Below, one piece after another: positions 1 through 18,746 of a DNA stretch of 18,746 nucleotides. The stretch is from Selaginella moellendorffii. Taxonomy: Eukaryota; Plantae; Lycopodiophyta. The position numbers and the translations under genes were made by a program. Numbering within the stretch: the first letter of the stretch is position 1; each line of letters opens with the position of its first letter. The notes under the pieces were generated by a model. That model was not told the origin of the DNA, searched no databases, and saw only the letters and a list, made by a program, of their open reading frames with translations. The DNA lies in NCBI RefSeq assembly GCF_000143415.4, contig NW_003314517.1:1-18746 (forward strand). Reading direction: 5' to 3'.

Positions 1-430
1 CTTCCTGCATTGGATGTGTGTGCGTACCAATATGTACTACAACTCTACCAGCCTCTCCATCCCATGGAAGAAAATAGTATATCTTGGCCCCGTAGATGGC
101 ACAACACAATGGAGCATTTTTGCAAAACTGACACTTGAATCCAACACCAATGGTGTCACAGATGAGAGGATTGGTTGCAGATCCTTAAAAAAATATGGAG
201 TTTTTACCACACTCTCAATTGCATGCTTTATTCACACAATCCAAATACCCACCACAATGAACCATGAACACTGTGCCTTTGAAATGCTGGAAATGTGTGG
301 TCTTAATCTTGCACCAGTTGTGAAAGTCCTGCTTCGTCTCGATCCCCTTTTGTTTTGAGCTGACAAAAGGTGGTAGTTCAAAGAAGATATTGCCATTTTA
401 TGTAGATGGGAGCTTGCTAACGGGCCTATC
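1..430 (-). pseudogene. Degenerate N-terminal part of a probable Mutator/MULE-related transposase with a WRKY/GCM-like Zn-binding domain; runs off the left edge
   Basis: Manual minus-strand translation in one frame gives VSKLPST*NGNIFFELPP...QDFHNWCKIKTT...HCGGYLDCVNKACN*ECGKN..FF*GS...KCQFCKNAPLCC...AKIYY...RVVVHIGTHTHP. The pattern C-G-x-L-x-C-x-N-x2-C ... CxxC ... HxGxHxHP resembles GCM-like domains of MULE-type transposases as I recall them. Three in-frame stops are present. The upstream ORF 426-878 (-) may be a frameshifted N-terminal part. Confidence 0.55.
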
Positions 431-914
431 CAGAAAGGAACACACGATAGAGAGGTGTGAAAACTGGAAAGCATTGCAAACAACTTTGAATATCAGTGAA
501 GTTCGAGTTTGGAAAATTCTTAGCTCGCACTAGACTAAAATCTCCATTAGAACTAGAATAGGAAGAAATGATGATGACCGAATCTTGCTTCACATTCACT
601 TTGGCAGGATTGCAGCCTCGCACTTTGATTGGAGATCCAAAAACTCGAATCTCCTTTGACTTGGAATGTTGTAAATCCCAATGTTGTCCACCTTCACCTA
701 CACCTAAAAGAAGAAACTCCGATTGTTCAACTACACCAATGTTGTTGCGAATCACAGCCTCCAATGAAATAGAACTGAGAGAAAGATCAAAACGTCGGCA
801 AAGAAAACTTTCTGAAATAAGACTTTGAGAGAAAAAAAGCGGTGGGTGATCTTGGTAATGCAAAAGGAAACTCTCCATTTTGTTGCCTTTAAGTTTTGGA
901 ACTTTAAACTTTTA

Positions 915-1190
915 TAAAGAAATGTCACCTCAAACATGCGCTATGCCATTATGTGAAAAGAAAGGGCGATTTTATTCTAGGATCTAACATTGAATAATGT
1001 TGTTATAATAAATTCTATATGAAGTATATAGGACTATGTTGTACAATATTAAAAGTCTGTATACATTGAATTCAAAAACATGCTCCAATTTATTATATGG
1101 ACTAACTTTTGGTAGAACGGAAAGAAATATCACCTCAAGCATATGCCATAATATGAAAGATATGAATGATTTTATTCTAGGATCTACCAT
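915..1190. repeat. Diverged direct duplication with about 200-bp period, next to the gap
   Basis: GATTTTATTCTAGGATCTA occurs at 968-986 and 1168-1186. It is preceded by AAGAAATGTCACCTCAAACAT and AAGAAATATCACCTCAAGCAT respectively. Confidence 0.75.
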
Positions 1191-1195
1191 CAACT

Positions 1196-1605
1196 NNNNN
1201 NNNNNNNNNNNNNNNNNNNNNNNNNNNNNNNNNNNNNNNNNNNNNNNNNNNNNNNNNNNNNNNNNNNNNNNNNNNNNNNNNNNNNNNNNNNNNNNNNNNN
1301 NNNNNNNNNNNNNNNNNNNNNNNNNNNNNNNNNNNNNNNNNNNNNNNNNNNNNNNNNNNNNNNNNNNNNNNNNNNNNNNNNNNNNNNNNNNNNNNNNNNN
1401 NNNNNNNNNNNNNNNNNNNNNNNNNNNNNNNNNNNNNNNNNNNNNNNNNNNNNNNNNNNNNNNNNNNNNNNNNNNNNNNNNNNNNNNNNNNNNNNNNNNN
1501 NNNNNNNNNNNNNNNNNNNNNNNNNNNNNNNNNNNNNNNNNNNNNNNNNNNNNNNNNNNNNNNNNNNNNNNNNNNNNNNNNNNNNNNNNNNNNNNNNNNN
1601 NNNNN
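1196..1605. other. Assembly gap (N run)
   Basis: 410 consecutive N. Confidence 0.99.
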
Positions 1606-1689
1606 TGAGAGTGGGAGATTGGGAGTGACTGTGGGATCCATCAGCGATGAACAGAATGCCACCAAGAGTAAGTTTTTTACTCCTCCACT

Positions 1690-2215
1690 CCCACACCACG
1701 TCCAGTGCCGCCACTGCCTAGGGCCGCCGCTGCCCATCACCGCCATGCCCAGTGCTGCCGCGCCCACGCCATGCCACGCCCAGCGCCGCCACTGCCCAGG
1801 GCCACCGCTGCCCAGCACCACCGCTGCCAAGTGCCCAGGCCGGGCATCAGGCCGGGCATTTGGCCGGGCACTCCGCCCGGGCAGGCCATCGGTACACCAG
1901 CGAACCGGCACCCGTGCCAAGTGCCTGTGCCAAGTGCCCGGGCCAGGCACTCTGCGCAGGGCCGGCAAAGGCACTTGGGGGCAGGCCGGCCAAGGCGCTT
2001 GGGGGCGGGCCAGTTTGCTGGCGAACCGGCCCTCCCCCAAGCACCTTGGCCGGCCCGCGTCAAGTGCCCGGCCTAGTCAGTTGGACTTGACGCTGGGAGG
2101 AGGGCCGGTTTGCCAGCGAATCGGCCCGCACCAAATGCCCAGCTAGGGCACTTGGACTTGGCATTGGGAGGAGGGCTAGTTCGCCAGCGAACCGGCTCCT
2201 ACACCAAGTCCTTGC
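1690..2215. repeat. GC-rich region built from short reiterated motifs, probably internal repeats of a DNA transposon
   Basis: Repeated GCCGGGCA, GCCAAGTGCC and CCAGCGAA(C/T)CGGC motifs. A 71-bp-period duplication TTGGACTTG..TGGGAGGAGGGC..GTT.GCCAGCGAA starts at 2081 and 2152. Confidence 0.7.
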
Positions 2216-2262
2216 CCCAAAGTCCTCGCTTCTTATGCATTTTTAATTTATATTATTTTCAG

Positions 2263-4105
2263 AAACGGAAGCAATTACAAAAGGAGAAGGATGTTGGATC
2301 AAATAGAAGACATGAGGAAGATGAGATCCAGGATGACAATCAAGTTGGCCTTCAGATAGAGATTTCCACAGCGACAACTCTGCCGTCTTCACAACCAGAT
2401 AGCTCTAGTCCACATGCACCCCCATTTTTGCCACCACCACCATCGATGCCACCACCACCATTACCACTGCCACCACCATTGCCACCTCTACCTTCATCAC
2501 CACCATTACCACCACCGTCATCACCACCATTACCACCAATGCCATCATCGCCATTATTACCACCACTACCGCCACCATCATCACCACCAGCAGCGCGATT
2601 GTCGTCACTACCATTGCAGCCACAACCACAAATGCCACTACTCTTAACATATTCACAAAATATGGCAGAAACTAACTACATTACAAAGTAGTGCCCAAGT
2701 GCGCCTGACGGGGGTGTTAGGCCCAAGCTGAGGGCTAGATCTGATAATGGTGCTACTGGAGGTGTAGCTGAATCTGAAAGAGAAGTGGAGTTACTTAAAC
2801 ACATTGTAGACAAGCACTTACAAGAGACAGTTTTGAGAACCAAAGAAAAGGCCATTCACACGACTCTAGAGTTTCTCAAGTGGGAAGGCCCGGGAGACAT
2901 AATCCGAGAAATCCCACTATGTCGATTCACTCAGACAAGCATCATTCGGTCTGCTTCACCACACTTCATCAACATGAACATCTATAGTCTGTACAAACAT
3001 AATGGCCTTAGGACAAACATAGGTATGTTCCTTGTTTCGGTCTTCAAGCCAGGAACGACAAATACCCTCTCGGTGTCACCAGAAATTGAGAGGGTTTGGG
3101 ATGACATTTGGAAAATGAAGTCCTGCAAATTTGACAACATGCTTATGAGCCATCTTGAGACTCAACAATTTGTGGGGAAAATGTTCTACATTATCGACGG
3201 GAATCATCGCTGGTGTGCGTGGATAAAGTGCATCAATGAATGCTTCCGAGACAATCCTGTCTATCACATCAATGTTCTGGCTGGACATGTACATACGAGA
3301 GGATCTCTAGATGTGGCAAGGCTTGTGATAGCTTGCCACAAAATTAATGCATAGGTACCACTCCCTCTTCAATCACTTTTAACAATTTGTGTTTTGCAAG
3401 TTAGGATAGTTTGCAGTGCAGAAACGAAGCCTAGTACATGATATTGAGCAAATCCGGTTTCTTGCCAATCTCGACGAGGATGCAGTCTGCAGCCACTATG
3501 GTGATGATTTAGCATCACTTATTCGGCATCATCGAGGTCGTCAAGATGCCAATAGATGGTACAAGAATCCAATGGCTTTTATAACAACTGTGTCTAGCAC
3601 CTTTTATAGGGGATGATCTTGAGCAATTTCCATTCAAGGACTTCATCACCACTAAGCTTATAAAACTCGGAGAGGACTGGCTGCCAAAGAAGGCCACAAA
3701 CACGACTCCATTTGATAAACAACTTGGCCAACTTTACTTCATGCGTCGAGCGGCTTTTAGGTAACATACAATTTCTCAACTATACTCAATTTGTTTATAT
3801 TCTATTATAGGTATCTCTAATATAGAGGTGTTCCTCTCGAAACACCGGTATGCACACGACTCCTGAGGCATGGTGTGAGAGATGGAGGCATGTACCCGAC
3901 AACAATGAAGTTTCCAGTGGCAATAAAGCAAGCTTGTCCTTGGGAATTAGAGATGCCAGATTATACACCAACCCACCAAGAAGCTACAAGAGGCAACAAT
4001 GAAGACATGCCGAATGACAAAGATGATGGCCATGAGAATGTCAACACTGTTGGTGCCAATGGCGAGGAGACTGAAGATGGCGGTCATAATGATTTGCAAC
4101 TTTAA
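2263..4105 (+). pseudogene. Decayed multi-exon gene: Pro-rich N-terminal region followed by a ParB/sulfiredoxin-like domain
   Basis: Acceptor ttttcag at 2256-2262 opens one reading frame to 3354, broken by a single TAG at 2689; ORFs 2110-2691 and 2785-3354 are in the same frame. Motif FYIIDGNHRWCAW at about 3184-3222. Further GT-AG introns near 3355-3400 and 3761-3810, with stops and a frameshift downstream. The 3' end is uncertain. Confidence 0.55.
2410..2645 (+). repeat. Imperfect (CCA)n trinucleotide tract encoding a poly-Pro/Ser linker
   Basis: CCACCACCA/TCACCACCATTACCA reiteration; translates as PPPPSMPPPPLPLPPP... Confidence 0.9.
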
Positions 4106-4265
4106 AATTTTCATATAAAAACTATGAAGTTCTTTATTTTGCCTCATATCTAGAACTGGAAGAGTATCAAGTAAAATTTGAAAAACAATATAAAACTGAG
4201 AAACTCTATATTATCCTATAAATTACAAGGATTAACACTGACAAAGAGTCTAAAATTAACATCAT

Positions 4266-4895
4266 TAATCTAGAGGGCACAAAATCCAACTTCTGGACAT
4301 GTTTTAAGATTGATGTCATGATGGTTAAACACTAAACAACTTAAAAGAGCTAAAGATTGTTCTAGCTATTTGAAAACTTGCCTCAATCTAACCAAGCACC
4401 TAGCTTCATTATTTGTTATTCTTTGCATTCAAGTATGCAAAGAAATCAGTAGAATTGAACGATTGGTTCCTCAAGGTATGAAAAAAACAAGAAACCTGGA
4501 TCAATTCATATATATATATATATATATTTCTCTCTCTCCATTTGACTCATCCTTTCTATAATTTTGCAGACTCGTCAAAAAAGGGGAACTCATTCACCCT
4601 GTACCACAACAGAACTTGCAGGGGTGAGCTTTTGAGTGTTCTGAAGCTACTTTCTTGTTTTGACTTCCAGGTTCCTTGGATTCAATTCAGAAAGGCCTGT
4701 AGGAAAACGTTTCCCTGTAAAAAGGTCAACAGGTCAAAGGTGCGAATATTCTCTCTACAAAAATCAACAATCCCGCCATTTTCTTCATCGCATCTCCCTA
4801 GCTCTCCAGCTTCCACTCGATCTCTGCCCACTTGAGGTGAGATGCATGGACCCTACAAGAAGCCAGCCGTGGACACCACGCTGTTGCATCTCCCG
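4266..4895 (+). repeat. Left arm of a long diverged inverted repeat
   Basis: The reverse complement matches 10223-10706 and 15817-16082. Examples: GAGATGCATGGACCCTACAAGAAGCCAGCCGTGGACACCACGCTGTTGCATCTCCCG versus about 10223-10280, and TAGAGGGCACAAAATC versus GATTTTGTGCCCTCTA at 16062-16077. Contains (AT)10 at 4508-4527. Confidence 0.9.
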
Positions 4896-5119
4896 TCAAT
4901 GTGCTGTTTACCAATCCTGTTCCTTGAACCGAACCTGACTACAAGAATGTCGGAAGCCCTTGAGTTGTTCAGCAACCTTGATCGAGAACAACTCGGCCTG
5001 GCAGAAATGCAATGAACTGGCAACGAATTCATATTTCTGAATCGAAATCAGCATGCTGAAAAAGACCAAGACTACAAAGATGACAAAAAGGAGCAAGTAA
5101 ATCTAAACAACTACAACGA

Positions 5120-6535
5120 TCAGCTGCAAACAGACATGTTAGAAGCCAAGCAGAGAATCAGAGTAATGAAAGAAACTCACCAAACAGATTGCCAGGCAGG
5201 ATCGCAGAGGATGTCGCGCGCGGATGGACGCTGGTCGCGTCTTGCTGCGACCAGCTCCAACACCTTGGGCGCAATTGATGGGTGTTGGTACGCCCAGTCT
5301 GCTGGTAAAACGCCATCCCGGACGTCAATCAATACCGACTCCCTTTCCTACACAGATTCACCAAACTAAGCAAGCACGTTGCACAAACTGCAGCCAAACC
5401 TGGTCCGGGGGACACCTCCAATGAAGTTCGAAGAGTATAACTCCAAGCGCAAGCATGTCAGTGTAGGTTGAGTTGCTCCGGCGCTGGGGAGAGTAGTAAA
5501 CTGCTCTCCCCTTCTTGATATTTTCGGTCTCGAGCATGGACTCCTTATTTTTAGCTGTAAGCCAACAAATGAGAGATGGAAGAGATGTTTCATTTGCCTA
5601 CCAAGACCGAAATCTCCCAGCTTGATGCGTCCATCGTCTGTGACGAAGATGTTGTGTGGTGCTATATCCCGATGAACACCCACGTTGTCGTGCACATGCG
5701 CCACAGCTTGAAGAAGCTGCCTAAACGCATCTGCAGGTGGTGACTCACCGCCGAGGAGCACCGACTGGAGCGAGCGGCCACAAAACTCCATGACAATGTA
5801 CACTTTCGACTTGCCCGGCTCGCCTTCCTCCTTCCACATGTCGAAGTATTTGACTATGTTGGGGTGTTCGCAGCGCTGGAGCATCTCTCCCTCCTTGAAG
5901 ACGAGCGCGACATCCTGGTCTCTGGACTTCGTTGCTGTGCGAACCTTGATGACTTTGATGGCGTAGATTTGTTCGTCCTCCTTGCTACGGCACTTGTATA
6001 CTTTCCCGGACGCCCCCTGGCCAACACAAGCGAGCACTTCGTAGCTGCTGCAGAAGCGGCCTGGACAAGAGAGACAAGGGGCCACTCAGAAGCGAAAAGA
6101 TGCCAAAGAGAGAAATTATTGTATCCACCTGCTGCTGCAACTGGAGTGTCCCCTCCCTTTTGGATCGATTCCACGATCCCGCTCACAACATTCGCCGAGA
6201 GCATCTTGAATCTCTCCAAGCGTTGCGCCATTGCGAGGAATTGCCGAACATATTCTGCAAGTCATGAATCAAACCAGCAAAGAGTCGTGTCAGCCAACAA
6301 AAGGAATTCTTCGTACCAGCGTCAGGAGCAGCCTGCAACGCGGATGCATCATGATCAGTTTCTCCTGCTCCTGCTTCAACGAGGATCTTCGTCAGACAAG
6401 TGCAGATGTTTCAAGTTTTGACCAACCTGATCGAGCTCGGTTAATCGGATCCAGTGGGCGGGTCCTTTCGAGCATGACGTCGGATCGCTTCTGAGTGTGT
6501 AGTTTCTTCGGACCAGCAGCTCTCTTCCTCTCCAT
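5120..6535 (-). CDS. Ser/Thr protein kinase, GCN2/eIF2alpha-kinase-like, single kinase domain, predicted 357 aa; exons 6535-6427, 6370-6317, 6254-6129, 6060-5602, 5554-5400, 5347-5181, 5123-5120
   Basis: The start lies in a CCACCATGG context. Six GT-AG introns (56, 62, 68, 47, 52, 57 nt) all keep frame with no internal stop. Motifs: GQGASGKV, YAIK, alphaC Glu (FKEG), HPNIVKY, YIVMEFC, HRDIAPHNIF, KLGDFGLAK (joined across an intron), YYSPQ, DMLALGVILFELHW, ERESVLIDVRDGVLP, RPSARDIL. If the last intron is retained, the protein ends at TGA 5179-5177 with the same length. Confidence 0.88.
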
Positions 6536-6863
6536 GGTGGACTCTGGTCAGTGTTAACATTGTGAGTCGTTGCTGAAAGCACAAAAGAGATTGAGGAGTC
6601 GTTACTGCACTTATCCAACGGCTGGAGCCTAGAATGCGCACATCAGCTGTCCGTCAATGGATTCACAACAAACTTGCTACAATTGCATGCTCACCTCCTT
6701 CCGCCTCGCCAACAGTAGGCCGCAAACCAGCAGCGCACTCACCTCTGCCCTTGCCAGACGATCACGGCAGCCCTAGATTTGGAATCTAAGCTGCATTGAG
6801 GATCGACGCGCTCCTCCGGCTCCCTTGGGCTTTGCCAATAGTAGGGTACAAGAATACAAAAAG

Positions 6864-6896
6864 GCCACGTCGGATAGAGTTTAGGGCAGACGTGGC
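6864..6896. promoter_or_regulatory. Two ACGTGGC (ABRE/G-box-like) elements in inverted orientation in the short intergenic region between the divergent genes
   Basis: GCCACGTC (6864-6871) and GACGTGGC (6889-6896) form a perfect 8-bp inverted pair with a 17-nt spacer. Confidence 0.45.
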
Positions 6897-6961
6897 ACCT
6901 TTGGTCACCTTTTGTGGCCCTTCTACATTTCCACGGAATACGAGTCATTTTTTAGGGTATC

Positions 6962-7549
6962 ATGAAGAAGACACTCATTCTCGATCTAGACAATACACTG
7001 GTATACGCTCATAAGGATCTCGTCTCTTCTGTGAGTTTCAGCATGGAATTCGACGATGATGCACCACTCCACATCATGAAGAGACCAGGCGTAGATGAAT
7101 TTCTGGGGAAGGTTTCAAAAGTGTACGATATCGTGGTGTTTAGTGCCGCCCAGGAGAAGTATGTCAACCTTGTGGTTGACCATCTGGATCCTACTGGGGG
7201 GCTTGTGTCGAGGAGGCTACATGGTGGCAATTGCGTTGTTCTAAAGGACGGGACGAAAGTCAAGAATCTTGACCATGTAGGGTTTCGGGATTTCAAGCGG
7301 GTGGTGGCACTGGATGACATTATTGACTTCTACCAAGGTCATCAAGAGAGCGTGGTGGTGGCTCCAAAGTTTGAGGGGTCAAAGGATGACCACTTCTTGG
7401 CAGATGTAACCCCATTCCTTCTTGCGCTGTCAAAGTGTGTGGATTTTACCAAAGTTACCCATCGCTGGAATATTGGACAATGTGTGGAGAAGCAAGGCAA
7501 ATTGTACGTCCTAGATTCATTCGATGATGAATGGGTTGTTTTTAACTGA
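6962..7549 (+). CDS. FCP1/SCP (NIF domain) CTD-small-phosphatase-like HAD phosphatase, 195 aa, intronless
   Basis: LILDLDNTLV (DxDxT motif I), KRPGVDEFL, VVFSAAQEKY...LDP (motif II), VKNL (motif III Lys) and VALDD (motif IV) in an uninterrupted ORF. Confidence 0.9.
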   Translation: MKKTLILDLDNTLVYAHKDLVSSVSFSMEFDDDAPLHIMKRPGVDEFLGKVSKVYDIVVFSAAQEKYVNLVVDHLDPTGGLVSRRLHGGNCVVLKDGTKVKNLDHVGFRDFKRVVALDDIIDFYQGHQESVVVAPKFEGSKDDHFLADVTPFLLALSKCVDFTKVTHRWNIGQCVEKQGKLYVLDSFDDEWVVFN

Positions 7550-8015
7550 TTATGTTATTTTGTAATAAATGTTATAATTTTTCTGCCAAAGTGTAGTTTA
7601 TGCAAATGAATCTTAGTGAACTTTTGAGCTCAGGATTTCCTACATGTCTCATGTAAAACAAAATGGTAAAACAAGAAAAACAGCACACCAAAATTTCAAG
7701 CTCTTTTGCCAAGGAAATCCCCTTTACATTGAGAGCCCACAGCTTTGCAACACCCCATGAACACCAATAGGAGCACGTGCCCACCTCAAACAACAAGCGA
7801 GACTTCAAAAAGGACATCACTGATCCAACATTTGATGCCGGAGGATAAGATGCTTAGAAGACTGATTGCTTCTGAGTTCCTTTATGTCTGTTGTTTAGTG
7901 CCTATGTGAAGCTATTGACAAAAAATGTGATGATCCATATGAAGCTCTTCACAGGATCATGGAGAGAGAGAGTGTGTCTTTGCCATGACATCCAGCGAAG
8001 TAGCAAGAGGAGTGA

Positions 8016-8369
8016 TCGCGGTGCCTCCTGCAGGCATCTCCACGCCAAATCGCGACTCTTCTGCGCCAATGTGGTGATTCCAACTCCCTCCCGCGAGGGA
8101 AGCTCTTGCACCGCCGCCTGGCCGCCACCCTCGACCTACGCCACCACCCCTTGTTCAGCAATCCCCTCATCCTCATGTATGGCAAGTGCTCCGGCCTCCC
8201 GGACGCATGGTCCGTCTTCCACGATCTCGTCCACAAGAACGCCTTCTCCTGTAACATCATGATCTCGACGCTCTGCGCAAACGGCCAGAGCGCGCAAGCG
8301 ATTGATCTCTTCCTCGCCCTCGCCAGCGATTCAGTCGTCCGCCCCACCCACGTCTCGTTCGTCGCCGCG
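8016..8369 (+). pseudogene. Fragment of a PLS-class pentatricopeptide repeat gene (about 2-3 motifs), 5' half of a chimera
   Basis: The frame after TGA at 8013 reads ATLLRQCGDSNSLPRGKLLH...NPLILMYGKCSGLPDAWSVF..LVHKNAFSCNIMISTLCANGQSAQAIDLF...RPTHVSFVAA, matching PLS-PPR L/S/P motif wording. There is no clear in-frame ATG before the first motif. Confidence 0.8.
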
Positions 8370-8967
8370 AAAAGAGTGCTTGGATTGTTCTCGGAGTCAC
8401 TGGGACTGGAAAGTGGTGCTCTGGAGGAAGCTTTTGGAGGAGAGAGGCATGCGATGAGGATGAACTACTATCCACCTTGTCCGGAGCCGGAGCTTACAAT
8501 CGGACTGGACGCTCACGCGGATCCAAACGGTTTCACTATACTCCAGCAGGACACCAGGGTGAAAGATGGCCTCCAGATTGTACACTGTGGAGCGTGGGTG
8601 CCGATCAAACCTCTGCCTGGCGCCTTTGTTGTCAACATTGGAGATCAACTTCAGGTAAGCTTTCTTTCGATCGTCATAGTCGTGCATGCATGAGATTTCC
8701 AGGTTTTGATTGTGTGTTATTCAGATTCTTTCCAATGATGCGTACAAGAGTGTGGAGCACCGAGCAGTTGTCAACTCGGAGCGAACTCGAGTCTCCATTG
8801 CTTCATTCTATGGGCCAGCAGAAGATAGTCACATTGCTCTGCTGGCGCAGCTGGTCGCTGACGAAGCGCCTGCTTGCTTCAAAGATAGCGTCTATGGAAA
8901 TTACCTTCAATCGTTCTACGCTTCAAAACTAGATGGCAAAGCAGCCATTGAGACTGTGAGGTATTAA
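8370..8967 (+). pseudogene. C-terminal catalytic half of a DOXC-class 2-oxoglutarate/Fe(II) dioxygenase, fused in frame to the PPR fragment; intron 8655-8724
   Basis: MRMNYYPPCPEP, HADP (HxD), GLQI, VVNIGDQLQ|ILSN, SVEHRAVVN (distal His), RVSIASF (RxS). A 70-nt GTAAGC..TTCAG intron sits at the usual plant 2OGD position. The N-terminal DIOX_N part is missing. Confidence 0.85.
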
Positions 8968-9444
8968 ACTTTGTCTGCGTCTCGTTTAGGTTATGGTCAT
9001 CCCACTCATTTCCATCCCTCCCTTAGCCATACATCTGTGGGTTGTTGATGCAATAGCTAATGCAGAGGGTCTCAATCTTTCATACAGCCGCCTTGCTCTA
9101 TTGATTTGATCCAACATAGAAAACTGGTGACATGCCAGAAAGAAAAGAAGTATACATGTAACGAAACAAATCAAGGAATTCTTTTCTGCTTTCTTTCCTT
9201 CTGGCAAGTCAATAATTTTCAGCTGGATCGAACCAACAAAGCAAGGTGGGAGATGTCTGAAGTTCTTAGAAAGATTGAAATTGTTGGCGGAGGTGCAACT
9301 TAATGAAACGTACCACATGTTCTAATTGTCTTGCTCTCATTCGATGAGCAGACTAGTATGAAGAAAGGATGACAAAAACCTCCTGTTGTTTACGAAGTTC
9401 TTGGAATTGTCATGTATGGCTCGCAAAAGCACAGAAAGCTTCAA

Positions 9445-9960
9445 GACTTGACCTTCCTGCTTGATTTCTTTAAAGCACCGCATGGCACAGACTACAAACA
9501 AAGATTTAAGACTGGTTTAAATTATGAAATCAAGATTTACCTTCAAAGTGCTTGCAAGAGCTACAATGCAGCCAACCACGGCCAACAGTAACTGCTTCTC
9601 GTCCGAAATAGAAGTTTCAGAAATAAACCATGCTAGGATGTTCAGGCTATGTACTTGTACAGGCGTAGTGCTATCTGGTATTAGTGTTAGTGACGACAAG
9701 TAAAACACTGAGCTTTCCAAAAGAAAAGAAACAGCATCGGGAGTATGCCCAAGGAGAATTAACAGTAAACTTCCCGGAAAGTTTTGCGAAAATAAGATAA
9801 ATACTATCACGAACCTGCAATAGAGAAGATTAGTATTTCTTCTCGATGGAATTTTATTATGTTGGAGTCCAAGAACGAGATGATCCTACACAATACAAGA
9901 AGTTTCCCCAGACGTAGATACTGGTCAGCACCGAACTGAGATACATAATCAACCTAAATT
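9445..9960 (-). pseudogene. Possible spliced exon remnants of an unidentified gene
   Basis: Several minus-strand GT-AG intron-like segments are present, e.g. TTGAAG|GTAAAT...TTTGTAG near 9540-9490 and CTAAC..ACCAG| near 9675. No protein family recognised. Confidence 0.25.
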
Positions 9961-10222
9961 ATGCACAGATGAAAAAAAATTCAAGAGTATCAGTGTTAGT
10001 TGCGATTGCTGACACTCCTCACAAAGAAATGGAACGTATTTCTTTAATAACTGCTCTGGGTTTCCTAGCTGGTTAATTTCTTGCGTTGGAAGTCACGAAG
10101 GCTCAACATTTTGGAGTTGTCAGATATCATAGCTGCTTCTAGCATTAAATCAGTTAGAATGTGATCCTGCACTGCAATTTATAGTTCACGTCGGTATACC
10201 ACACATCTTGAACAAAATAGCT

Positions 10223-10706
10223 CGGGAGATGCAACAGCGTGGTGTCCACGGCTGGCTTCTTGTAGGATCCATGCATCTCATCTCAAGTGGGCAGAGATCA
10301 AGTGGAAGCTGGAGAGCTATCCCAATTCTCGGGAGATGTGATGAAGAAAATGGTGGGATTGTTGATTTTTGTAGAGAGAATATCTGCACCTTTGTGAAAC
10401 GTTTTCCTACAGGCCTTTCGAATCCACGGAACCTGGAAGTCAAAACAAGAGAGTAGCTTCAGAACATTTAAAAGCTCACCCCTGCAAGTTCTGTTGTGGT
10501 ACAGAGTGAATGAGTTTCTTTTTGCCTATGGGAACCTCAAAGCCAATGCCAAGTACCTTTTTTGACAACTCTGCAAAATCATAGAAAGAAAGAAACAAAT
10601 GAAGAGAGAGAGAGAGAGAGAGAGAGAGGAATTGATCCATCAATTTTATCTGTCTAGGTTTCTAGTTTCTTCCATACCTTGAGGAACCAATTGTTAAATT
10701 CCATTG
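10223..10706 (-). repeat. Right arm of the long inverted repeat, inner part
   Basis: Reverse complement of about 4450-4895 with several indels. (AG)13 at 10603-10628 lies where the left arm has (AT)10(TC)5. Confidence 0.9.
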
Positions 10707-10708
10707 AG

Positions 10709-10793
10709 TACTACTCCTCTTTTTAAATAATTTGTTGTGCTATTTAAAATATACTACTCCTCTTTTTAAATTTCTTTTGTGCTATCTAAAATA
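10709..10793. repeat. Two-copy tandem repeat, about 43-bp unit
   Basis: TACTACTCCTCTTTTTAAAT...TTGTGCTAT.TAAAATA starts at 10709 and 10752. Confidence 0.85.
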
Positions 10794-10803
10794 TATCACA
10801 ATG

Positions 10804-10978
10804 TGTGAGGGCCAAGTGTACAGTTATGATGCCGTATACTAATATTAGCATAGTGGGATTTTGGTAGCCATCGGATTGGTTTTAATTTGGACCACTCGCT
10901 CCAGTATATAAGCTAGGGTTTTTGGGCTAATTGATATGCACATTTCTGTATTCCCTTTCCATATTCTAAGCACTCACA
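10804..10978 (+). repeat. 5' LTR (175 bp)
   Basis: Starts TGTGAG, ends CTCACA; contains TATATAA; about 11 substitutions and no indels versus the 3' LTR (counted by eye). Confidence 0.96.
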
Positions 10979-10979
10979 T

Positions 10980-10999
10980 TGGTGGAGGTAAGGGGCATC
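10980..10999 (+). promoter_or_regulatory. Primer-binding site resembling the complement of a tRNA-Ala 3' end
   Basis: TGGTGGAGGTAAGGGGCATC starts 1 nt after the LTR. Its reverse complement ends ...CTCCACCA, as tRNA-Ala acceptor ends do. Confidence 0.7.
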
Positions 11000-11211
11000 T
11001 TTGATTGTCCCTAAGGAGTGCTTGGATTTGGGATTTTGGTTTAGATCTAGCTTTTGCATCGTCTAGATCTAGCTTTTTCCATTTCCTGTCTTTTGTTCTT
11101 TCTATTCAGGGTTTTGGTTTAGATTTAGCTTTTTGCGTTATTTAGATCTACCATTTCCTTCTAGCTTTTTGTCATTTCTCTTCTTTTGCTCTTTCTTTTT
11201 CGTTCATCTTC

Positions 11212-12144
11212 ATGGCAAATCAGCAATCTCCTCCTTTGACTCTAGAGCAGCAATTGGTACAATTGCTTGATGCTATGCGCTTGCAGTTGAACAACCAAAC
11301 TCAGTTGATGGCGGCATTCACGGCACGTGGTACAACTCCTCTTGCTCTTGGTGCCAATCCTCGCGTTCGGCCGGAGTTCTTTTGCGGGAATCCTGGGGAT
11401 GATGTGTACCATTGGTTCGATCACTTCACGGTGATTGCCACATATCATTCTTGGGATGATGCTCGATGGTTGCGTGAGTTTCCCATGTGTCTCCAAGGGA
11501 TGGCGTTGCAGTAGTACAATGGTTTGAGCACAGCCACTCGTGGGGATTGGAGTGTTCTCCCGGACGTCTTCAAACGCGCCTTCGGACATGCCGATGATTG
11601 TGATGATACTTTCCAACAATTGCATTGTCTTTGCCAAGGGCCATCTGAGTCGGTGATGCAATTTGGCGTTCGTTTCCGAAGTCTTTTGCTTCATGCGGAG
11701 CCAAATATGTCGGAGCGGATCAAGCTAGGAATGTTGTGGCCAGCACTTCGTCAAGATCTTGTCGGCCTTATGCATGCACTTGCTCCTGCCACCCTTGACA
11801 ATGCTCTTCACTTGGCACAATGTTATGAGATGTTGCCTCTTCCACTTCTCGCTGCACGTCCTTCCGCTCCACTTCCTATGAGTGATGGTCCTGTTCCAAT
11901 GGAGGTTGATGCTGCTACTGCTCGAGTCCAAGGACAAGCGCGAGGACATGGTCGTGGCTGTGATGTTCGCTACTGGGTGTGTGATAAAGTTGGTCATACT
12001 TATCGGCATTGCCGTCGTTTTCCGGATTGGCGACCTCCATTTCCTAGGTGGAGACCTTGGCGTCAGCAACATCCCGTGGGTGCTGCTGCAGTGGAAGGTC
12101 TGGACACCGAGATGCATCCGGGAAACGAGGAGTCGCGCGAGTAA
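11212..12144 (+). pseudogene. gag: gag of the gypsy element (one premature stop)
   Basis: ORFs 11212-11514 and 11524-12144 share a frame, split by TAG in place of Trp (LQG.ALQW). Also LCQGPSESV..F, PVPMEVD, and the zinc knuckle YWVCDKVGHTYRHC (first Cys lost). Confidence 0.9.
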
Positions 12145-12181
12145 CGGAGGGACCTTGCGCAAATAAATCAGTGACCCCTCC
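12120..12181 (+). promoter_or_regulatory. -1 programmed ribosomal frameshift signal: slippery heptamer G GGA AAC plus H-type pseudoknot
   Basis: GGGAAAC at 12120-12126 is phased X XXY YYZ in the gag frame, and pol is in the -1 frame. After an 8-nt spacer, stem 1 is GCGCGAG (12135-12141)/CTTGCGC (12154-12160) and stem 2 is GGAGGG (12146-12151)/CCCTCC (12176-12181). Confidence 0.8.
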
Positions 12182-15100
12182 ATCTTTCTTTCGGGAGTAC
12201 CATCAAGGGGTTCACTCGGCACCAGTTCATCCAGTGTTTACTTTCCAAGTTCGTTTTTATAACCAGAGGTCTCCTATTATTCTCTCCGTGTTGGTTGATA
12301 TAAGTTCGAGTTTATCTTCTATTGCTCGACCTGTTGCCACACGTTGTCGTCTACACTTGCGTCGTGCGGCGGAACCATTTTTCATTCTTTATGGCAACGG
12401 CTGTACACATGCATGTGCACAGGATGAGGTGGACCTAGTTGTGCGTGTGAGCGATCTTGAGCTTGAGTTGCAGTCGTTGCGGGTGGTGCCAAGTCAAGCT
12501 TTTGACCTCATTCTTGGTATGGATTGGTTGCAGCGCAATCATGCCAAGTGTGACTTTGAGGCTTCTCCCCTTGTCTTATACTTCTTTATGTTTCATCCAT
12601 TCCTCTCACTTCCATACCTCTTCGTCCCTCTACTTCTACCTCTACTTCCATTACTTTTGTTCCCCCACTCTTTCCTTTTGTGTTTCCATCTTGTTCTGCT
12701 TTTCCCTTTTCCGATCCCTCCGACGATCTTTTGTTGCAGCAGTTGACCGGCTCATGAAGGAGTATTCTGATCTATTTGAATTTGACCTATCGTCTGGGGC
12801 CAAGATTGCCACATGTCATCCGATTCCAACTGGGGATGCTCGTCCAATCAAGGTTCCTGTTTGTCGTTGGTCACCTAAGGAGATCAAGATTTTACGAGCA
12901 AACGTCAAGGAAATGCTAGAGAAAGGTGTTATTCGGAAGTCGCGGAGTCCTTGGGCGAACCTCATCTTGTGACGAAGCCTGATGGGAGTATTCGTTTCTG
13001 CATCGACTATCGTCTGTTAAACGAAGTGACGATCCCAGATGTGTATCCTCTTCCTCATACTGCTGATCTCTTGGATCGTCTGGGGTGAAGTCGTTGGTTC
13101 ACCAAGCTAGATCTTCCTTCTGGGTATTGGCAAGTACCAATGGCTGAAGAAGATATTCCTAAGATTGCTTTTCGTACACCATTTGGTTTGTATGAGTTCT
13201 TGGTGATGCCGTTTGGTTTGAACAATGCTCCAGCAACTTTCCTATGGATGATGGACGAGGTTCTTTGCGATATGCCGGAGGTGACTGCTGACTTCATTGA
13301 TGATGTCTTGATCCACTCGGAGGGGACGTGGGAGGAGCACGTTCGTGATGTTTGTAAAGTGTTGGATCGGCTACACGACGTTGGTTTAAAGCTGAAGCGG
13401 TCAAAGTACGTGTTTGGGTCCAAGGACACAACTTATCTTGGGTACCGTATTTCTCGTGAGGGTTTGCAAGTTGATCCTGACAAAATTGTGGCTGTTCTAA
13501 AGTTCCCTACTCCGAAGTGTGTGAATGATGTGCAACGCTTTTTGGGTAAGGTGCAGTATCTTGGTCGTTTTGTGGATCATCTTTCCGATCGCACTACACC
13601 ATTGCGAGCGTTGCTGAAGTCATCCATGTCATCTTTCATCTGGTCTTCGGATTGTGAGCGGGCGTTCATGGATCTCAAAGAGCTATTGACGACTCCTCCG
13701 GTTTTGGCGTATCCTGACTACACTTGACCTTTTATTTTGCACGTGGATGCTTCTGACATTGGTCTTAGAGGTGTGTTGATGCAAGAGAGCTCAAGTGTGC
13801 CTGGTCAGCGCCATCCCATTGCATATATAAGCTGTACATTACAACCAGCGGAGATGAACTACTCCACGACGGAGAAGGAGTGTTTAGCAGCAGTCTGGGG
13901 TTTTGAGAAACTTCATGCATATCTACATGGTTCTCGGACGTTACTTGAAGGTGACCATGCTACTGTTACTTCATTATTGAAGCGGAAGAACCTGGTTGGT
14001 CATACGGCTTGATGGGCTTTGAAGCTTCAGATATATGATTTTGATGTTGTTCATCGCCCAGGGAGTTCTATGGCTGATGTTGATGCCCTTTCTCGAGCTC
14101 CTCTTCCTTCTCCACTCACTTCTCATGTTTCTGATGAACCTGTTGTTCCAGCATCTGTGGATTTTCTAGATGAGGATTCTGTGCCGTCGGCGGTTACTGT
14201 CCTTGACGTTCAGTGTCCACAGGGCGCAGAGCAAGATCTACCTTATCTTGATGAGGTTCGCGAGGCTCAAAAGATTAAGCCGTGGATTCGAAGGCTTTGA
14301 GATGGGTTTGAAAATCCTGCATCACTTGCTGATGACTTGCCTTTCCAGCATTTACATTCTCAATATTGCCTTGAAGATGGCCTTCTTTATTTTGTGGGGA
14401 CGGATCCTGATGATCATTTACGGCTGGTGGTGCCTTCGGTGTTTATTCCGCGGTTTCTCCATGCCTACCATGATTCTCCTGTTCTTGGTGGGCATATGGG
14501 ACACCGTCGTGTCACCGAGAAGCTGCGCAGGTCTTTCTATTGGCCGGAGATGCGACATGATATTATCCGGTATGTGCGTAACTACGTTTGGTGCCAAGCT
14601 CGTAATACTCCCCCTCGTGCTACAGAAGGATGGTTGGAGTCAATTGCGGTTTCCCGTCTGTTTGAGTTAGTGGCGTTTGATCTTATGGGACCTTTTCCAT
14701 GGTCGACTGTTGGCAATGAGTATGTTATTATTGCTTCTGACTACTTAACTCATTGGGTGGAAGTTGGTGCTCTTGCTAGCGCCTCTACAACTGCTATTGG
14801 ATACTTCCTTCTCAATCGAGTGGTGTTCCAGCATTTTTGTCTAGAGTAGATTCTTTCAGATAATGGTCCCGCATTTATGGCTGAGATATTTCATGTTTTG
14901 ACATCTCGGTTGGGGATACGCCACACTCTTACGAGTGCTTATCATCCACAATCAGACGGTTTGGTGGAACGGCTTGTTCGGACATTCAAAGGGATGATTG
15001 CGAAGTATGTGAACTTTCAGCATTCGGATTGGGATGGTTATTTGCCGTCTCTTCGGTATGCATATGTTACAGGGGTGCAGAGTTCTGTTGGTGCTTCACC

Positions 15101-15509
15101 ATATAAACTTCTATATGGTCATGATCCAATATTACCAACGGAGCTGGGTTTACCTTCGCGATTGCCACGAGCTGCCGATGCTAGATCATGGGATCAGTAT
15201 TTGACGAGCATTCTTCCACTTGTTCGAGCAGAGTTTGCCGAACACTTAGGCCGCGTACAAGTGGGACAACAATGGTGCTACAACTCCCATCATCGTCCAC
15301 CTGCGGAGTACAAAGTGGATGATTTGGTGTTAGTCCGTTTTCCCCATCTTATGGTACATGGTTTATCTAAGAGGCTTCTTGTGCAATGGAAAGGACCGTA
15401 TCGAGTGTTGCGGCAAGTTGGACCACAAGTTTATGAGGTTCGGCATGATGTTCAGCAGGCCGATCCTCCAGAGATTGTGCATGTGCAGCGGCTGAAACGC
15501 TTCGTATAA
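12120..15509 (+). pseudogene. pol: pol of the gypsy element: protease, reverse transcriptase, RNase H, integrase with GPY/F motif; two frameshifts and five premature stops
   Basis: PR: VLVDISSS (decayed DS/TG) and DLILGMDWL. RT: RFCIDYR, MPFGLNNAPATF, FIDDVLIHS. RH: VDASDIG, YSTTEKE, DALSR. IN: HDSP..GH, FDLMGP, SDNG, GLVERL, WKGPYRV. Stops at 13086, 13725, 14010, 14298 and 14847. No chromodomain. Confidence 0.95.
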
Positions 15510-15619
15510 AGGGATCAGGAGGAGTTAATACCACCTACAGATCCACCGATGCCTCCTCCTGACGTTCCTCCAGATCCCGGCCCATCTTCAAGAGAACCCT
15601 GATGGTCTTCCATTATCCC

Positions 15620-15634
15620 GAGGGGATGGGATGA
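15620..15634 (+). promoter_or_regulatory. Polypurine tract
   Basis: GAGGGGATGGGATGA directly before the 3' LTR. Confidence 0.8.
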
Positions 15635-15809
15635 TGTGAGGGCCAAGTGTACGGTTACGATGCCATATACTAATATTAGCGTAGTGGGATTTTGGTAGCC
15701 GTCGGATTGGTTTTAATCTGGACCATTTGCTCTTGTATATAAGCTAGGGTTTTTGGGCTAATTGATATGCACATTTCTGTATTCCCTTTCCATATTCCAA
15801 GCACTCACA
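15635..15809 (+). repeat. 3' LTR (175 bp)
   Basis: Colinear with 10804-10978 and has the same termini. Confidence 0.96.
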
Positions 15810-15816
15810 AATGTAT

Positions 15817-16082
15817 ATTCTAATATATTTCTTAACATACTTGAATGCTAAGAATAACAACTAATGAGACTCGGCATTTGTTTAAATTGAGGCATTTGCA
15901 TACCATTGAATATTAATGTTAATTGCTAGCTGTTGCACACCAGGACAAATGGCAAGGAATGGTGTCCCCACTAGTTTCTAGTTTTTAAATAGCTAGAACA
16001 ATATTTAACTCTCTTAAGTTCTTTCATGTTTAACTATCAGGCCATCAATCTTAGATAGCTAGATTTTGTGCCCTCTATATTA
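15817..16082 (-). repeat. Right arm of the long inverted repeat, outer part, resuming after the gypsy insertion
   Basis: CATACTTGAATGCTAAGAATAACAA matches the reverse complement of about 4413-4438. AAATAGCTAGAACAAT...GATTTTGTGCCCTCTA matches the reverse complement of 4271-4372. Confidence 0.85.
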
Positions 16083-16745
16083 CAACTAGCCATTATGTAA
16101 TCTTTTCAAGTTCATCATTTCCAAGGGATCCAAGTGATTAACTATAATTGAAAAAAAAAATATCAGAGACATATTTTCTTATAATTTAGAGAAAATTTAT
16201 TTAATATTATTATCATAAATTTATAGTACTGAAATTAGAATGCTACATCAGCTAGACCAAGAGACAGCTATATAATGAATAATGATGTAAGAAACATTAA
16301 TTTTTAAGTTACTCTAATATTAAGTTTACTTCCTTATTTATATTATATTACATCTAGATTAGAAAAAAAATTTATTAACTTACAAAAACTCCTTTAAATC
16401 AAGCATAACCTACAATATAAAGAAATTATGAAATATTTTAAATGGGTTTATACCCAGCATTGTTTATAGAAAAAGATGAATAATTAAATATCTTGCTTAA
16501 TTTTGTATTGAAATGCATTCAATATTATAATTTTAGTTGAAGACTTTAATATTTGTTGGGACACTCTCTAATATAAGTATGAAACTTTATCCCAAAAAAC
16601 ACAAAGTTTCAAACTCTTTTGTTTTTCCAAAGAAAATATCAAAAACTTTTACACATAGACGGTTTCCATACTAGGACATGATCAGGCCAAACATATCCAA
16701 TAGTACCAGATCCAACACTTGGAATCCTCTGCAGGAAAAACACAA

Positions 16746-17060
16746 TGTTGTGAGCAAGCAAGACAAGAATATGGGAATCATAAAGCCCGAGAATAGATTG
16801 AAGACCGATTAAAGTAAATAACATGATGAAGAAGCAAGAACTTTCACAATAACACAAGGTTACGCAGCAGTTTAGATAGTCTCTTTATAAATGATTTCAC
16901 TTTTCTGAGCTAAGTGTACTTTTGAGGTAGAGAATTATGGCACAGCCAAGATGAGGGAGTACTAGGATATCCTTAAGGAAAGCAAGCACCGCTCACATCA
17001 CTAATGCCTCCAACTTAAAAAGATAGTCCATACTCATATAATAGTGCTTTAGTCACCGGA
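16746..17060 (-). repeat. Possible 3' LTR of the chromovirus element
   Basis: Lies directly downstream of the pol end, contains TTTATAAA, and ends in ...CTCACAACA on the minus strand at 16746. There is no partner LTR in the window and no clean PPT. Confidence 0.3.
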
Positions 17061-18746
17061 CTACGATCCTTCTTGGGCGTCGAGGGATAAGAGATGGGGA
17101 ATGAAAAGAATGAGGACTAAAATGAGAAGGATAGCGGCAGTGAAAGTCATGAATAAGGTCAGGAGAATGAATTAAGTGGTCTGCAGGTTCCCAAGTGCAT
17201 TCCTTAAGTTCATAACCCTTCTAATCTACCAGATAATAGAGTTTAGACCGTGAGATTTTGGAATCAAGGATGTCCTGAACCTTGTACTTAGACCCATCTT
17301 CAAGCTGCACTGGGGAGGTGGAGGAATGACCCGATTTGGAATAGGACTGGGAATGTAAGGCTCAAGGAGAGAGGAGTGAAAAACGGGGTGAATTTGATAT
17401 GAGGAGGGAAGTGCAAGGCGATAAATGACAGGATTAATGATGGCAGTGATAAGGAAAGGACCAAGGCATTTGAAATCGAGTTTGGGACATAGCCTGGTGG
17501 TGGAGATATTTCACCTAAGGATATCCCCGATATTGTAAAAGGGACAATCCTGACGATGGACATTGGTGAGTGTTTTGTGAGATTCTTGAGCACGATGAAG
17601 GTGGAAGGAGATGGAGTTATGGATTTCCTAGAGGTTAGAGATAAATGCCTCAAAGTGGGGATTTGAACGAGAGGATTCGGATAGAGAAGGAAGTGAGAGA
17701 TTAAATCAGGGATTTCAGCCAGAGTTTGTAAAGAAGGGGGAAACTTGAAGGGAGGAGTGAATGGAGTTGTTATAGGAGAACTCAGCAAGGGGAAGGATAT
17801 TGAACCAGTCATTATGATGATAGTTGATGAAACACCTCAGGAATTGTTCCAATGTCTAAATCGTTCACTCGGACTGTCCATCAGTTTGAGGATGATATGC
17901 TGAAGAGAGGTTGGCCTTCACTCCAAGAAGCTGCAGGAACTGTTGCCAAAAATGAGAGATGAATTGAGGTCCTGGATCCGAAACTACATCTACAAGAATC
18001 CCATGAAGTCGGAAAATTTCCTTGAATACCAGTTTTGCCATGTCCTCGCCTAAAAGCTCCTTGGTACACGGCAGGAAGTGTGCCATCTTTGTGAAGCGAT
18101 CCACCACGACTAAAATGTTGTTGAAGCTTCCAGAACTTGGAAGATCACTCAAGAAATCCATTGAGATGGATTCCCAAGGACCTGAAGGGACTAGGAAGGA
18201 ATGAAGCAAACCTAAAGGAAAGTGGCAAGGTACCTTATTCCAGGCACAAGTGTCACAAGAAGTAACAAAAGCTTTGATGTAATTGTCCATGTGAGGCCAC
18301 CAAAAGTCCCGTGCAACCAGCTCATAGGTTTTCGCAATGCCAAAGTGACCAGCAATTGGGCTATCATGGCATGCCATCAGGACCAACCTTCGAGCATCAC
18401 CTTTAGCAATGTAAATCTGCTCCCCACGGTACAACAAACCATCTAAAAACTCGAATTTGTCAAATCGCCGGCAATCGGGAGTCATTGGATGTCCAGCCTA
18501 AAGATGGGGGAAAATGTCACTGGCGAGGTCATCAGATTGAAGATCATTTCTGATCACGTCCATCAAGGAGGAGTCCTGAGGGGCCAGGGAAATTGCCATA
18601 ACTTGAAGAAGATCAGGACCAAGGATAACTTGATCCTGTTGATTGAAAGCAGGATTACCAGGCCTGAGACTGAGATAGGAGTGCCTTGAAAGAGCATCAG
18701 GAAGGCCCTGAAGCTTTCTAGGTTTGTACTTGATAACAAATTCAAA
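17053..18746 (-). mobile_element. pol: 3' part of a degenerate chromovirus-type Ty3/gypsy element: RNase H end, integrase, chromodomain; continues beyond the right edge
   Basis: From 18746: FEFVIKYKP...PDALSR (RNase H end), in frame with HDSPIAGHFG..CDTC..PWESISMDF..VSD.G..HPQTDGQSE*TI*TLEQFLRCF..LPLAEFSYNNS. Chromodomain [24 protein letters not shown]...TWEP at about 17286-17185. Many stops and at least one frameshift. Confidence 0.92.

Follow-up and report, generated by a model that had tools for sequence, protein, structure and literature searches.

The stretch of DNA analysed here (the window) is 18,746 nucleotides long and comes from the spikemoss Selaginella moellendorffii (contig NW_003314517.1, positions 1 to 18,746). 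On its minus strand, running from 6535 to 5120, lies a protein kinase gene of seven exons and six introns with no in-frame stop. The gene is real, intact and already annotated in RefSeq as ‘eIF2-alpha kinase-like’, with two isoforms, X1 of 358 aa (P0001) and X2 of 357 aa (P0188); our literature searches found no paper on it. The nearest point of comparison is a second Selaginella kinase, a paralogue (P0181, and its C-terminal part P0035) that is apparently fused to pantothenate kinase (PanK). The exons of the window gene are as follows.

Exon 1, 6427..6535, minus strand: ATG at 6535-6533; encodes residues 1-36 of P0001 and P0188, basic and predicted to be disordered
Exon 2, 6317..6373, minus strand: alternative acceptors, starting at 6373 (X1) or 6370 (X2)
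Exon 3, 6129..6254, minus strand: helical stretch of the N-terminal extension; homologous to the linker between PanK and kinase in the paralogue P0181/P0035
Exon 4, 5602..6060, minus strand: kinase N-lobe to DFGL, with the G-loop, K133, E154, HRDIAPHN (Ala231), N234 and DFG
Exon 5, 5400..5554, minus strand: activation segment KKGRAVYYSPQ, alphaF, and the alphaF-alphaG linker with Pro300
Exon 6, 5181..5347, minus strand: alphaG (ERESVLIDVRDGVLP) to subdomain XI (R342)
Exon 7, 5120..5123, minus strand: final base of a Cys codon and TGA, behind a 57-nt intron

The introns measure 56, 62, 68, 47, 52 and 57 nt, and all six are of the GT-AG type. In-frame exon translations were searched one by one against database proteins, the spliced model not being joined beforehand, and every one was found in P0001 and P0188, in order and free of gaps; that of exon 4 is 100% identical to a S. 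moellendorffii RefSeq protein. The two isoforms are separated by a NAGNAG acceptor at exon 2, which gives ..RARS-AGAGETD.. in X1 and ..RARS-GAGETD.. in X2. Without the last splice the frame would run ..SVW and then meet TGA at 5179-5177; P0001 and P0188 both end ..AWQSVC. The original prediction, made from the letters of the window, had proposed an intact gene with six short introns and a stop-free product of 357 aa, and this model proves to be RefSeq isoform X2.

The product is a member of the eukaryotic protein kinase superfamily, with the whole domain and all core motifs. Pfam Pkinase (PF00069) matches P0001 over residues 104-350 (E 1.9e-41; 142.7 bits, the cut-off being 31.7; positions 1-259 of the 263 in the profile), and exon 4 by itself reaches E 1.6e-34. 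The core residues, in P0001 numbering, are G111/G113/G116, K133, E154, H227-R228-D229, N234, D247-F248-G249, D283 and R342. The catalytic Lys, alphaC Glu, HRD, Asn and DFG that had been predicted are therefore all present, and HRDIAPHN and GRAVYYSPQ stand as they were first read. Neither an RWD nor a HisRS-like domain was detected: the N-terminal exons have no Pfam match, and the 358-aa protein matches only Pkinase and overlapping kinase-type models, which agrees with the predicted loss of all GCN2 regulatory domains. The kinase insert is likewise almost gone, with about 8 residues at the usual PEK insert site. A scan of NCBIfam returned sub-threshold bacterial kinase models only.

In the AlphaFold model the kinase core has a predicted local distance difference test (pLDDT) score of about 90, residues 1-52 are disordered (pLDDT <50), and the activation segment is poorly defined. 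The N-terminal extension is 97 residues long and consists of about 50 basic, disordered residues followed by two helices of moderate confidence (55-70 and 76-87). An N-terminus of some 95 aa had been described as novel; this applies to residues 1-49 only, as residues 50-97 are homologous to the linker of the Selaginella paralogue. The basic part (RKR...KK...KR) looks like a nuclear targeting signal, and such a function can only be conjectured.

Around the active site, several positions depart from the eIF2alpha kinases. In the catalytic loop, HRDIAPHN, Ala231 replaces the Lys of Ser/Thr kinases, the lysine of HRDLKPxN that marks a functional eIF2alpha kinase. Among about 440 catalytic loops in the fetched proteins, HRDxAPxN is confined to the Selaginella family and HRDxTPxN has three matches, all in bacterial kinases; literature searches with the motifs HRDxTPNN and HRDIAPxN found nothing. 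Arabidopsis GCN2 itself may also do without the catalytic-loop Lys (HRDxTPNN), in which case Ala231 would form a tie to plant GCN2. The P+1 loop reads KKG-R267-AVYYSPQ against G-T-x-x-Y-x-S-P-E in HRI and PERK, so that the equivalent of PKR T451 is Arg267 and the APE motif is SPQ (SPE in those kinases), and Asn263 sits at the position of PKR T446, a phospho-site, and PERK T980. Pro300 aligns with the Thr that opens alphaG in HRI and PERK, the equivalent of PKR T487. The alpha0 motif reads GRFCSSY against SRYLTDF in PERK and SRYLNEF in HRI, the Arg being kept and the acidic residue changed to Ser; we take these two residues to form the N-lobe salt bridge of the PKR dimer, a feature of the PEK family. 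In a deep mutational scan of PKR, G450/T451 and T487 were among the few highly constrained sites, and T487 stabilises alphaG and drives the change in eIF2alpha that is required for phosphorylation (PMC11556786). By the three-motif rule (loss of the VAIK Lys, the HRD Asp or the DFG Asp) the Selaginella protein is not a pseudokinase, since K133, D229 and D247 are kept, and what it has lost lies in the second shell.

To which kinase family does it belong? Exon 4 alone does not discriminate: against the PDB, GCN2, PERK, HRI, MAP4K3, SLK, NEK1, MYT1 and CDK2 all score 68-86 bits, and a word search with this exon was headed by NEK-like proteins. Because exon 4 left the families undecided, the full-length protein was used for the ranking. 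P0001 then matched HRI with 107 bits, PERK with 101/96, GCN2 with 96/93, NEK1 with 95, MYT1 with 85 and PKR with 80 (HMMER). For the paralogue P0035, eIF2alpha kinases take all of the first 17 places among distinct PDB sequences (119-91 bits), ahead of MYT1 (91) and NEK1 (87). A Foldseek search with the predicted model placed PERK, GCN2 or PKR at ranks 1-43 and then MYT1 and CaMKII, and the ESM Atlas neighbours were generic kinases only. In sequence and predicted fold the protein is closer to GCN2, PERK, HRI and PKR than to other families, most clearly for P0035 and in the fold search. These four kinases share with it alpha0 (S/K)R(F/Y)xx(D/E)F before the G-loop, HPNIV.Y...W.E after alphaC, Y(I/V)xME(F/Y/L)C, the residues NIF after the catalytic loop, the alphaG motif ER..L..R.G.(L/F)P and a short alphaF-alphaG linker. 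The Selaginella kinase differs from them in having no sensor domains and almost no beta4-beta5 insert, and in the substitutions listed above.

A maximum-likelihood tree was built from 77 kinase domains (LG+C20); its references include a single WEE sequence and animal GCN2, with STE, CAMK and CMGC kinases, plant GCN2, PEK_PEK and plant WEE1 lying outside the sample. The Selaginella proteins form a clade (99/99*) inside a PEK+WEE group (88/84) that also holds HRI, oomycete PEK-like kinases, one WEE1-like protein, GCN2, PERK and PKR and that is separate from the NEK-like group and from the group holding bacterial kinases. Within it, the Selaginella clade is part of a basal polytomy, nested in none of the four PEK subfamilies, and the starred animal GCN2+PERK+PKR clade (99/88*) leaves it outside. 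Forcing the Selaginella proteins together with the six animal GCN2 sequences was disfavoured by the approximately unbiased (AU) test (delta lnL 15.2, p-AU 0.0285), as was forcing them with the NEK group (delta lnL 8.2, p-AU 0.029). The predicted eIF2alpha-kinase likeness thus finds support in the PDB ranking, in Foldseek ranks 1-43 and in the position in the PEK+WEE group; of the alternatives named in the proposed phylogenetic check, NEK is disfavoured, and the WEE sequence falls within the group itself. The further claim of a GCN2 offshoot did not find support, given the position outside the starred clade and the p-AU against animal GCN2, a result that is not final with plant GCN2 outside the sample. 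Nor does the protein look like a GCN2 orthologue: it has no Pfam match beyond the kinase domain, whereas the animal GCN2 proteins compared do carry PF05773 and PF13393, and its kinase domain does not group with theirs. The kinase appears to be PEK-like, unplaced among the subfamilies and without support for GCN2 ancestry.

Its relatives seem to be few. Among 1.84 billion representatives searched with HMMER, with matches re-scored per domain, the only relative above 124 bits is P0035, which is also from Selaginella (182 bits, 40% identity, query residues 50 to 350), as the predicted lineage specificity would have it; among single domains, second place goes to that of a PKR-like kinase from a fish, with 102 bits. 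The HMMER list is ranked by summed score and multi-kinase proteins fill it down to 124 bits. P0035 is the C-terminal part of a 635-aa RefSeq model, P0181, with Pfam matches to Fumble (pantothenate kinase) at 66-309 (214.7 bits) and to Pkinase at 393-632. The fusion looks real, since the exon that ends the Fumble domain continues in frame towards the linker. RefSeq names the paralogue both ‘wee1-like protein kinase 2’ and ‘eIF2-alpha kinase’; the former name seems unfit, as eIF2alpha kinases head the PDB ranking of P0035.

Scaffold GL377674.1 carries two full copies of the paralogue about 12.9 kb apart and 98% identical (L010:5001-7471, L011:5001-7471) and, at its end, a truncated third (L009:28-1500). 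A NIF phosphatase gene lies 643 bp upstream of each full copy, in the same orientation. The paralogue shares with the window kinase the loop HRDIAPxN, the homologous helical linker, a phase-1 intron after DFGL, an adjoining NIF gene and a multi-copy (here tandem) state; the other intron positions differ between the window kinase and P0035. Only the paralogue is modelled with an N-terminal Fumble domain; it also retains GT in its P+1 loop, carries Lys at the +4 position of its catalytic loop (HRDIAPKN) and has its NIF gene on the same strand, whereas the window kinase has His at +4, Arg in the P+1 loop and a divergent NIF gene. The +4 position is Arg in the tyrosine-kinase loop HRDLAARN, and one might speculate that both Selaginella types have shifted a basic residue to a new place. 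The next-best match of the paralogue, P0209, was rejected as an orthologue; it is a two-kinase protein of low-complexity, N/K-rich sequence.

The gene was described at first as stand-alone, and in the sense of a single gene it is not. P0001 belongs to a 90% cluster of 17 proteins from at least 7 scaffolds, and 17 full-length loci were fetched (the window, L001-L008 and L012-L019), a count that is a minimum; there are thus at least 17 near-identical loci, in duplicated blocks. The kinase gene is at least 99.3% identical among copies, and its flanks 93-99%. Sixteen of the 17 full-length loci are intact, seven of them encoding an identical protein. A second copy lies on the window’s own 63-kb scaffold, and GL377730.1 (214 kb) has five, at about 10, 44, 82, 118 and 184 kb (L002, L012, L016, L001 and L013), an arrangement suggestive of large units repeated in an array. 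Several of the other copies were seen at scaffold ends, as would be expected if the repeats broke the assembly.

One of these copies, L001, is colinear with the window over 12.5 kb and is probably the other haplotype. In its exon 5, AATG-AAAT stands in place of ACCGAAAAT (L001:7000-7100, corresponding to window 5524-5527). One nucleotide is deleted there as part of a small complex change, which breaks the frame in the activation segment, and RefSeq models this frameshifted copy as two pieces of 278 aa and 75 aa.

The duplicated stretch and the features that the window kinase shares it with are these.

Duplicated-block stretch, 4096..7972, no strand: 97-99% identity with other copies; ends vary by copy pair
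Kinase-NIF spacer, 6536..6961, no strand: 426 bp between the divergent genes, conserved in the copies
NIF/FCP1-like phosphatase open reading frame (ORF), 6962..7549, plus strand: intronless, 195 aa, DLDNT motif, Pfam NIF E 1.6e-36; head-to-head with the kinase

Positions 7950-7972 are a (GA)n microsatellite of variable length among copies, which interrupts BLAST and mimics a block boundary at 7972. In the nine loci compared pairwise (the window and L001-L008) the common core is the kinase and the divergent NIF ORF. A transposon was considered as the carrier and rejected: the ends differ from pair to pair, one end is the microsatellite, and no common sharp termini were seen.

The NIF ORF is intact in seven of the nine copies checked and frameshifted in L003 and L008, in both of which the kinase is intact. 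A functional link between the kinase and the adjoining phosphatase is possible, as is a role of the 426-bp spacer as a shared promoter. The kinases of the window type and the paralogue are 37-40% identical and their NIF proteins 37.7%; that these values are about equal fits duplication of the kinase and NIF genes as one block.

Across the 17 loci we counted four synonymous and six non-synonymous substitutions, one complex frameshift and four intron sites that vary. The number of sites being 242 (synonymous) and 817 (non-synonymous), omega (dN/dS) comes to about 0.45, a value indistinguishable from 1. A dN/dS of 0.22 from nine loci was rejected as biased, as seven of those loci had been retrieved by identical protein. 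Segregating sites make up 1.1% of exons, 1.4% of introns and 4.6% of the kinase-NIF spacer. This evidence does no more than hint at recent constraint on the kinase copies. Constraint over the long term is implied by the frame and core motifs kept across the 40%-identity split from the paralogue.

What, then, is this gene? The reading that we favour on balance is that the kinase gene of the window is one intact member of a set of copies, specific to Selaginella and recently amplified, that encode a bare PEK-type kinase domain, with an atypical, weak or re-targeted kinase, or a pseudokinase, as the best guess for its product. The kinase and NIF pair would have been duplicated as a block from a fusion-type locus, or the reverse may have happened; the window lineage would then be the one with no PanK part and a different 5' end, and later multiplication would have taken place as part of blocks about 35-50 kb apart. 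ATP binding has probably been retained, as none of the nucleotide-binding or core catalytic residues is missing. Canonical eIF2alpha kinase activity seems unlikely, since the catalytic-loop Lys, the P+1 Thr, a Ser/Thr at the T446 position, the APE Glu and the alphaG Thr are all missing and the acid of the PEK dimer salt bridge is Ser. Ser51 of eIF2alpha would likewise be an unlikely substrate for a kinase that would lack both the usual route of activation, by activation-loop autophosphorylation, and the alphaG contact. An alternative role as a scaffold may be considered.

Several results weigh against this reading. Support for the PEK+WEE group is only 88/84, and its sole WEE sequence is a long branch. 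Single-domain relatives below 124 bits would be masked by multi-kinase proteins in the HMMER listing, and with 17 loci an omega of about 0.45 is not distinguishable from neutrality. L001 is frameshifted and, on other scaffolds, the cluster includes models that are truncated or fragmentary (102, 181 and 295 aa), which implies that some decay is under way. Finally, the call of a possible pseudokinase may err, as catalysis could be restored by the basic residues that lie elsewhere, in the paralogue Lys at +4 and in the window kinase Arg267.

Alternatively, the gene may encode an active eIF2alpha kinase that split from plant GCN2 and became uncoupled from uncharged-tRNA sensing, either constitutive or with a new input. 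The PEK family is nearest by sequence, fold and tree, the motifs alpha0 RF..SYE, HPNIVKY..W.E and ER..VL..R.G.LP are of PEK type, and the ATP-binding and core catalytic residues are all kept, as this proposal would expect. However, the AU test speaks against grouping it with animal GCN2 (delta lnL 15.2, p-AU 0.0285) and the starred GCN2+PERK+PKR clade excludes the kinase, there is no trace of GCN2 domains, and the paralogue has a Fumble domain instead. The equivalents of PKR T451, T487 and T446 are Arg, Pro and Asn. A word search with P0035 (218-693 aa band) had no plant GCN2 fragment among the matches listed, and one with an invertebrate GCN2 fragment had only animal GCN2 among the matches listed. 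We consider an active GCN2 derivative unlikely.

It is also improbable, in our judgement, that the copies are functionless passengers of a repeat-rich block that spread by segmental duplication, and are drifting towards pseudogenes, with the intact frame reflecting only their youth. Copies that differ by no more than 0.7%, an omega inseparable from 1, one frameshifted copy along with truncated or fragment models, a NIF ORF broken in two of nine copies, and retroelements in and around the blocks are what such a process would leave. Yet the split from the paralogue is old (40% identity), and the frame, one intron position and every core kinase motif have been kept across it; moreover, 16 of the 17 loci are intact and seven have an identical protein, diversity is lower in exons than in flanking DNA, and RefSeq models two splice isoforms.

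A bolder proposal would see here sensor-less PEK kinases with a rewired active site, the basic residue having been relocated to Lys at +4 in the PanK-fused form and to the P+1 Arg in the window form, each with a dedicated NIF/FCP1 phosphatase as a linked writer-eraser pair that was amplified about twenty-fold, the PanK fusion tying coenzyme-A metabolism to signalling. We hold it to be distinctly unlikely. Very unlikely is a divergent NEK-, WEE/MYT- or STE-type kinase with a superficial likeness to eIF2alpha kinases, for although MAP4K3, SLK, NEK1, MYT1 and CDK2 fall within 10 bits of GCN2 and PERK for exon 4 alone, NEK-like proteins top the exon-4 word search, NEK1 reaches 95 bits against the full protein, the sole WEE sequence shares the same unresolved tree group and the ESM Atlas neighbours are generic, the full-length protein and especially P0035 rank PEK structures first, the Foldseek top 43 are all PEK, the NEK clade is disfavoured (p-AU 0.029) and the C-lobe motif ER..VL..R.G.LP aligns to HRI and PERK.

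So, is the bare PEK-type kinase of Selaginella a second plant eIF2alpha kinase? Plants are usually treated as having one, GCN2, and Arabidopsis GCN2 is the one plant eIF2alpha kinase shown to work (PMC2639386). Plant GCN2, compared here by description and not by sequence, shares with the Selaginella kinase its broad kinase family and a land-plant host; it has RWD, pseudokinase, HisRS-like and C-terminal domains, none of which occur in the Selaginella kinase, and its gene has about 28 introns in cowpea (PMC8238008), against six here. Some angiosperms have a second plant PEK class besides PEK_GCN2, namely PEK_PEK of the iTAK / Lehti-Shiu and Shiu scheme (PMC4378628, PMC8238008), with single genes in Arabidopsis, Medicago, cowpea and sorghum (PMC4378628, PMC8238008, bioRxiv 10.1101/2020.09.15.298612). 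The statement in the original prediction that GCN2 is the only eIF2alpha kinase of land plants therefore holds for demonstrated kinases and fails for sequence classes, where PEK_PEK is listed. PEK_PEK, set beside the Selaginella kinase by description only, resembles it as a PEK-classified kinase found besides GCN2. No angiosperm protein was among the matches listed in the exon-4 word, HMMER or P0035 word searches, so close kinship with PEK_PEK is unlikely.

If an amplified, stand-alone PEK domain of a lycophyte still acted on eIF2alpha, it would provide a second input to plant translational control. The evidence points the other way, as the residues for eIF2alpha recognition are gone. The gene is a lineage-specific curiosity, not a proven second plant eIF2alpha kinase, and what it offers at present is a natural experiment on the changes that a PEK kinase domain undergoes when its sensors are gone, together with a warning about the RefSeq name. 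The repeated adjacency of kinase and phosphatase genes and the PanK-kinase fusion are its most noteworthy parts.

Beyond the kinase-NIF pair there are often genes for a 2OG-Fe(II) oxygenase and for PPR proteins, which flank most kinase copies. In the window, one plus-strand ORF at 8106-8693 has both a PPR-like stretch and the core of a 2OG-Fe(II) oxygenase (NYYPPCPEPELTIG...); probably these are exons of neighbouring or rearranged genes that are read through. Further along, positions 11212-15509 on the plus strand have retrotransposon-like gag, protease, reverse transcriptase and integrase wording, as read by eye, and an element 80% identical over window 10961-15812 occurs in L005, L006 and L007. 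A second integrase-like fragment, likewise read by eye, lies on the opposite (minus) strand at 17865-18485. At the other end of the window, a run of N at 1196-1605 marks an assembly gap, followed at 1.6-2.7 kb by a GC-rich stretch with long, Pro/Ala/Gly-rich ORFs on both strands.

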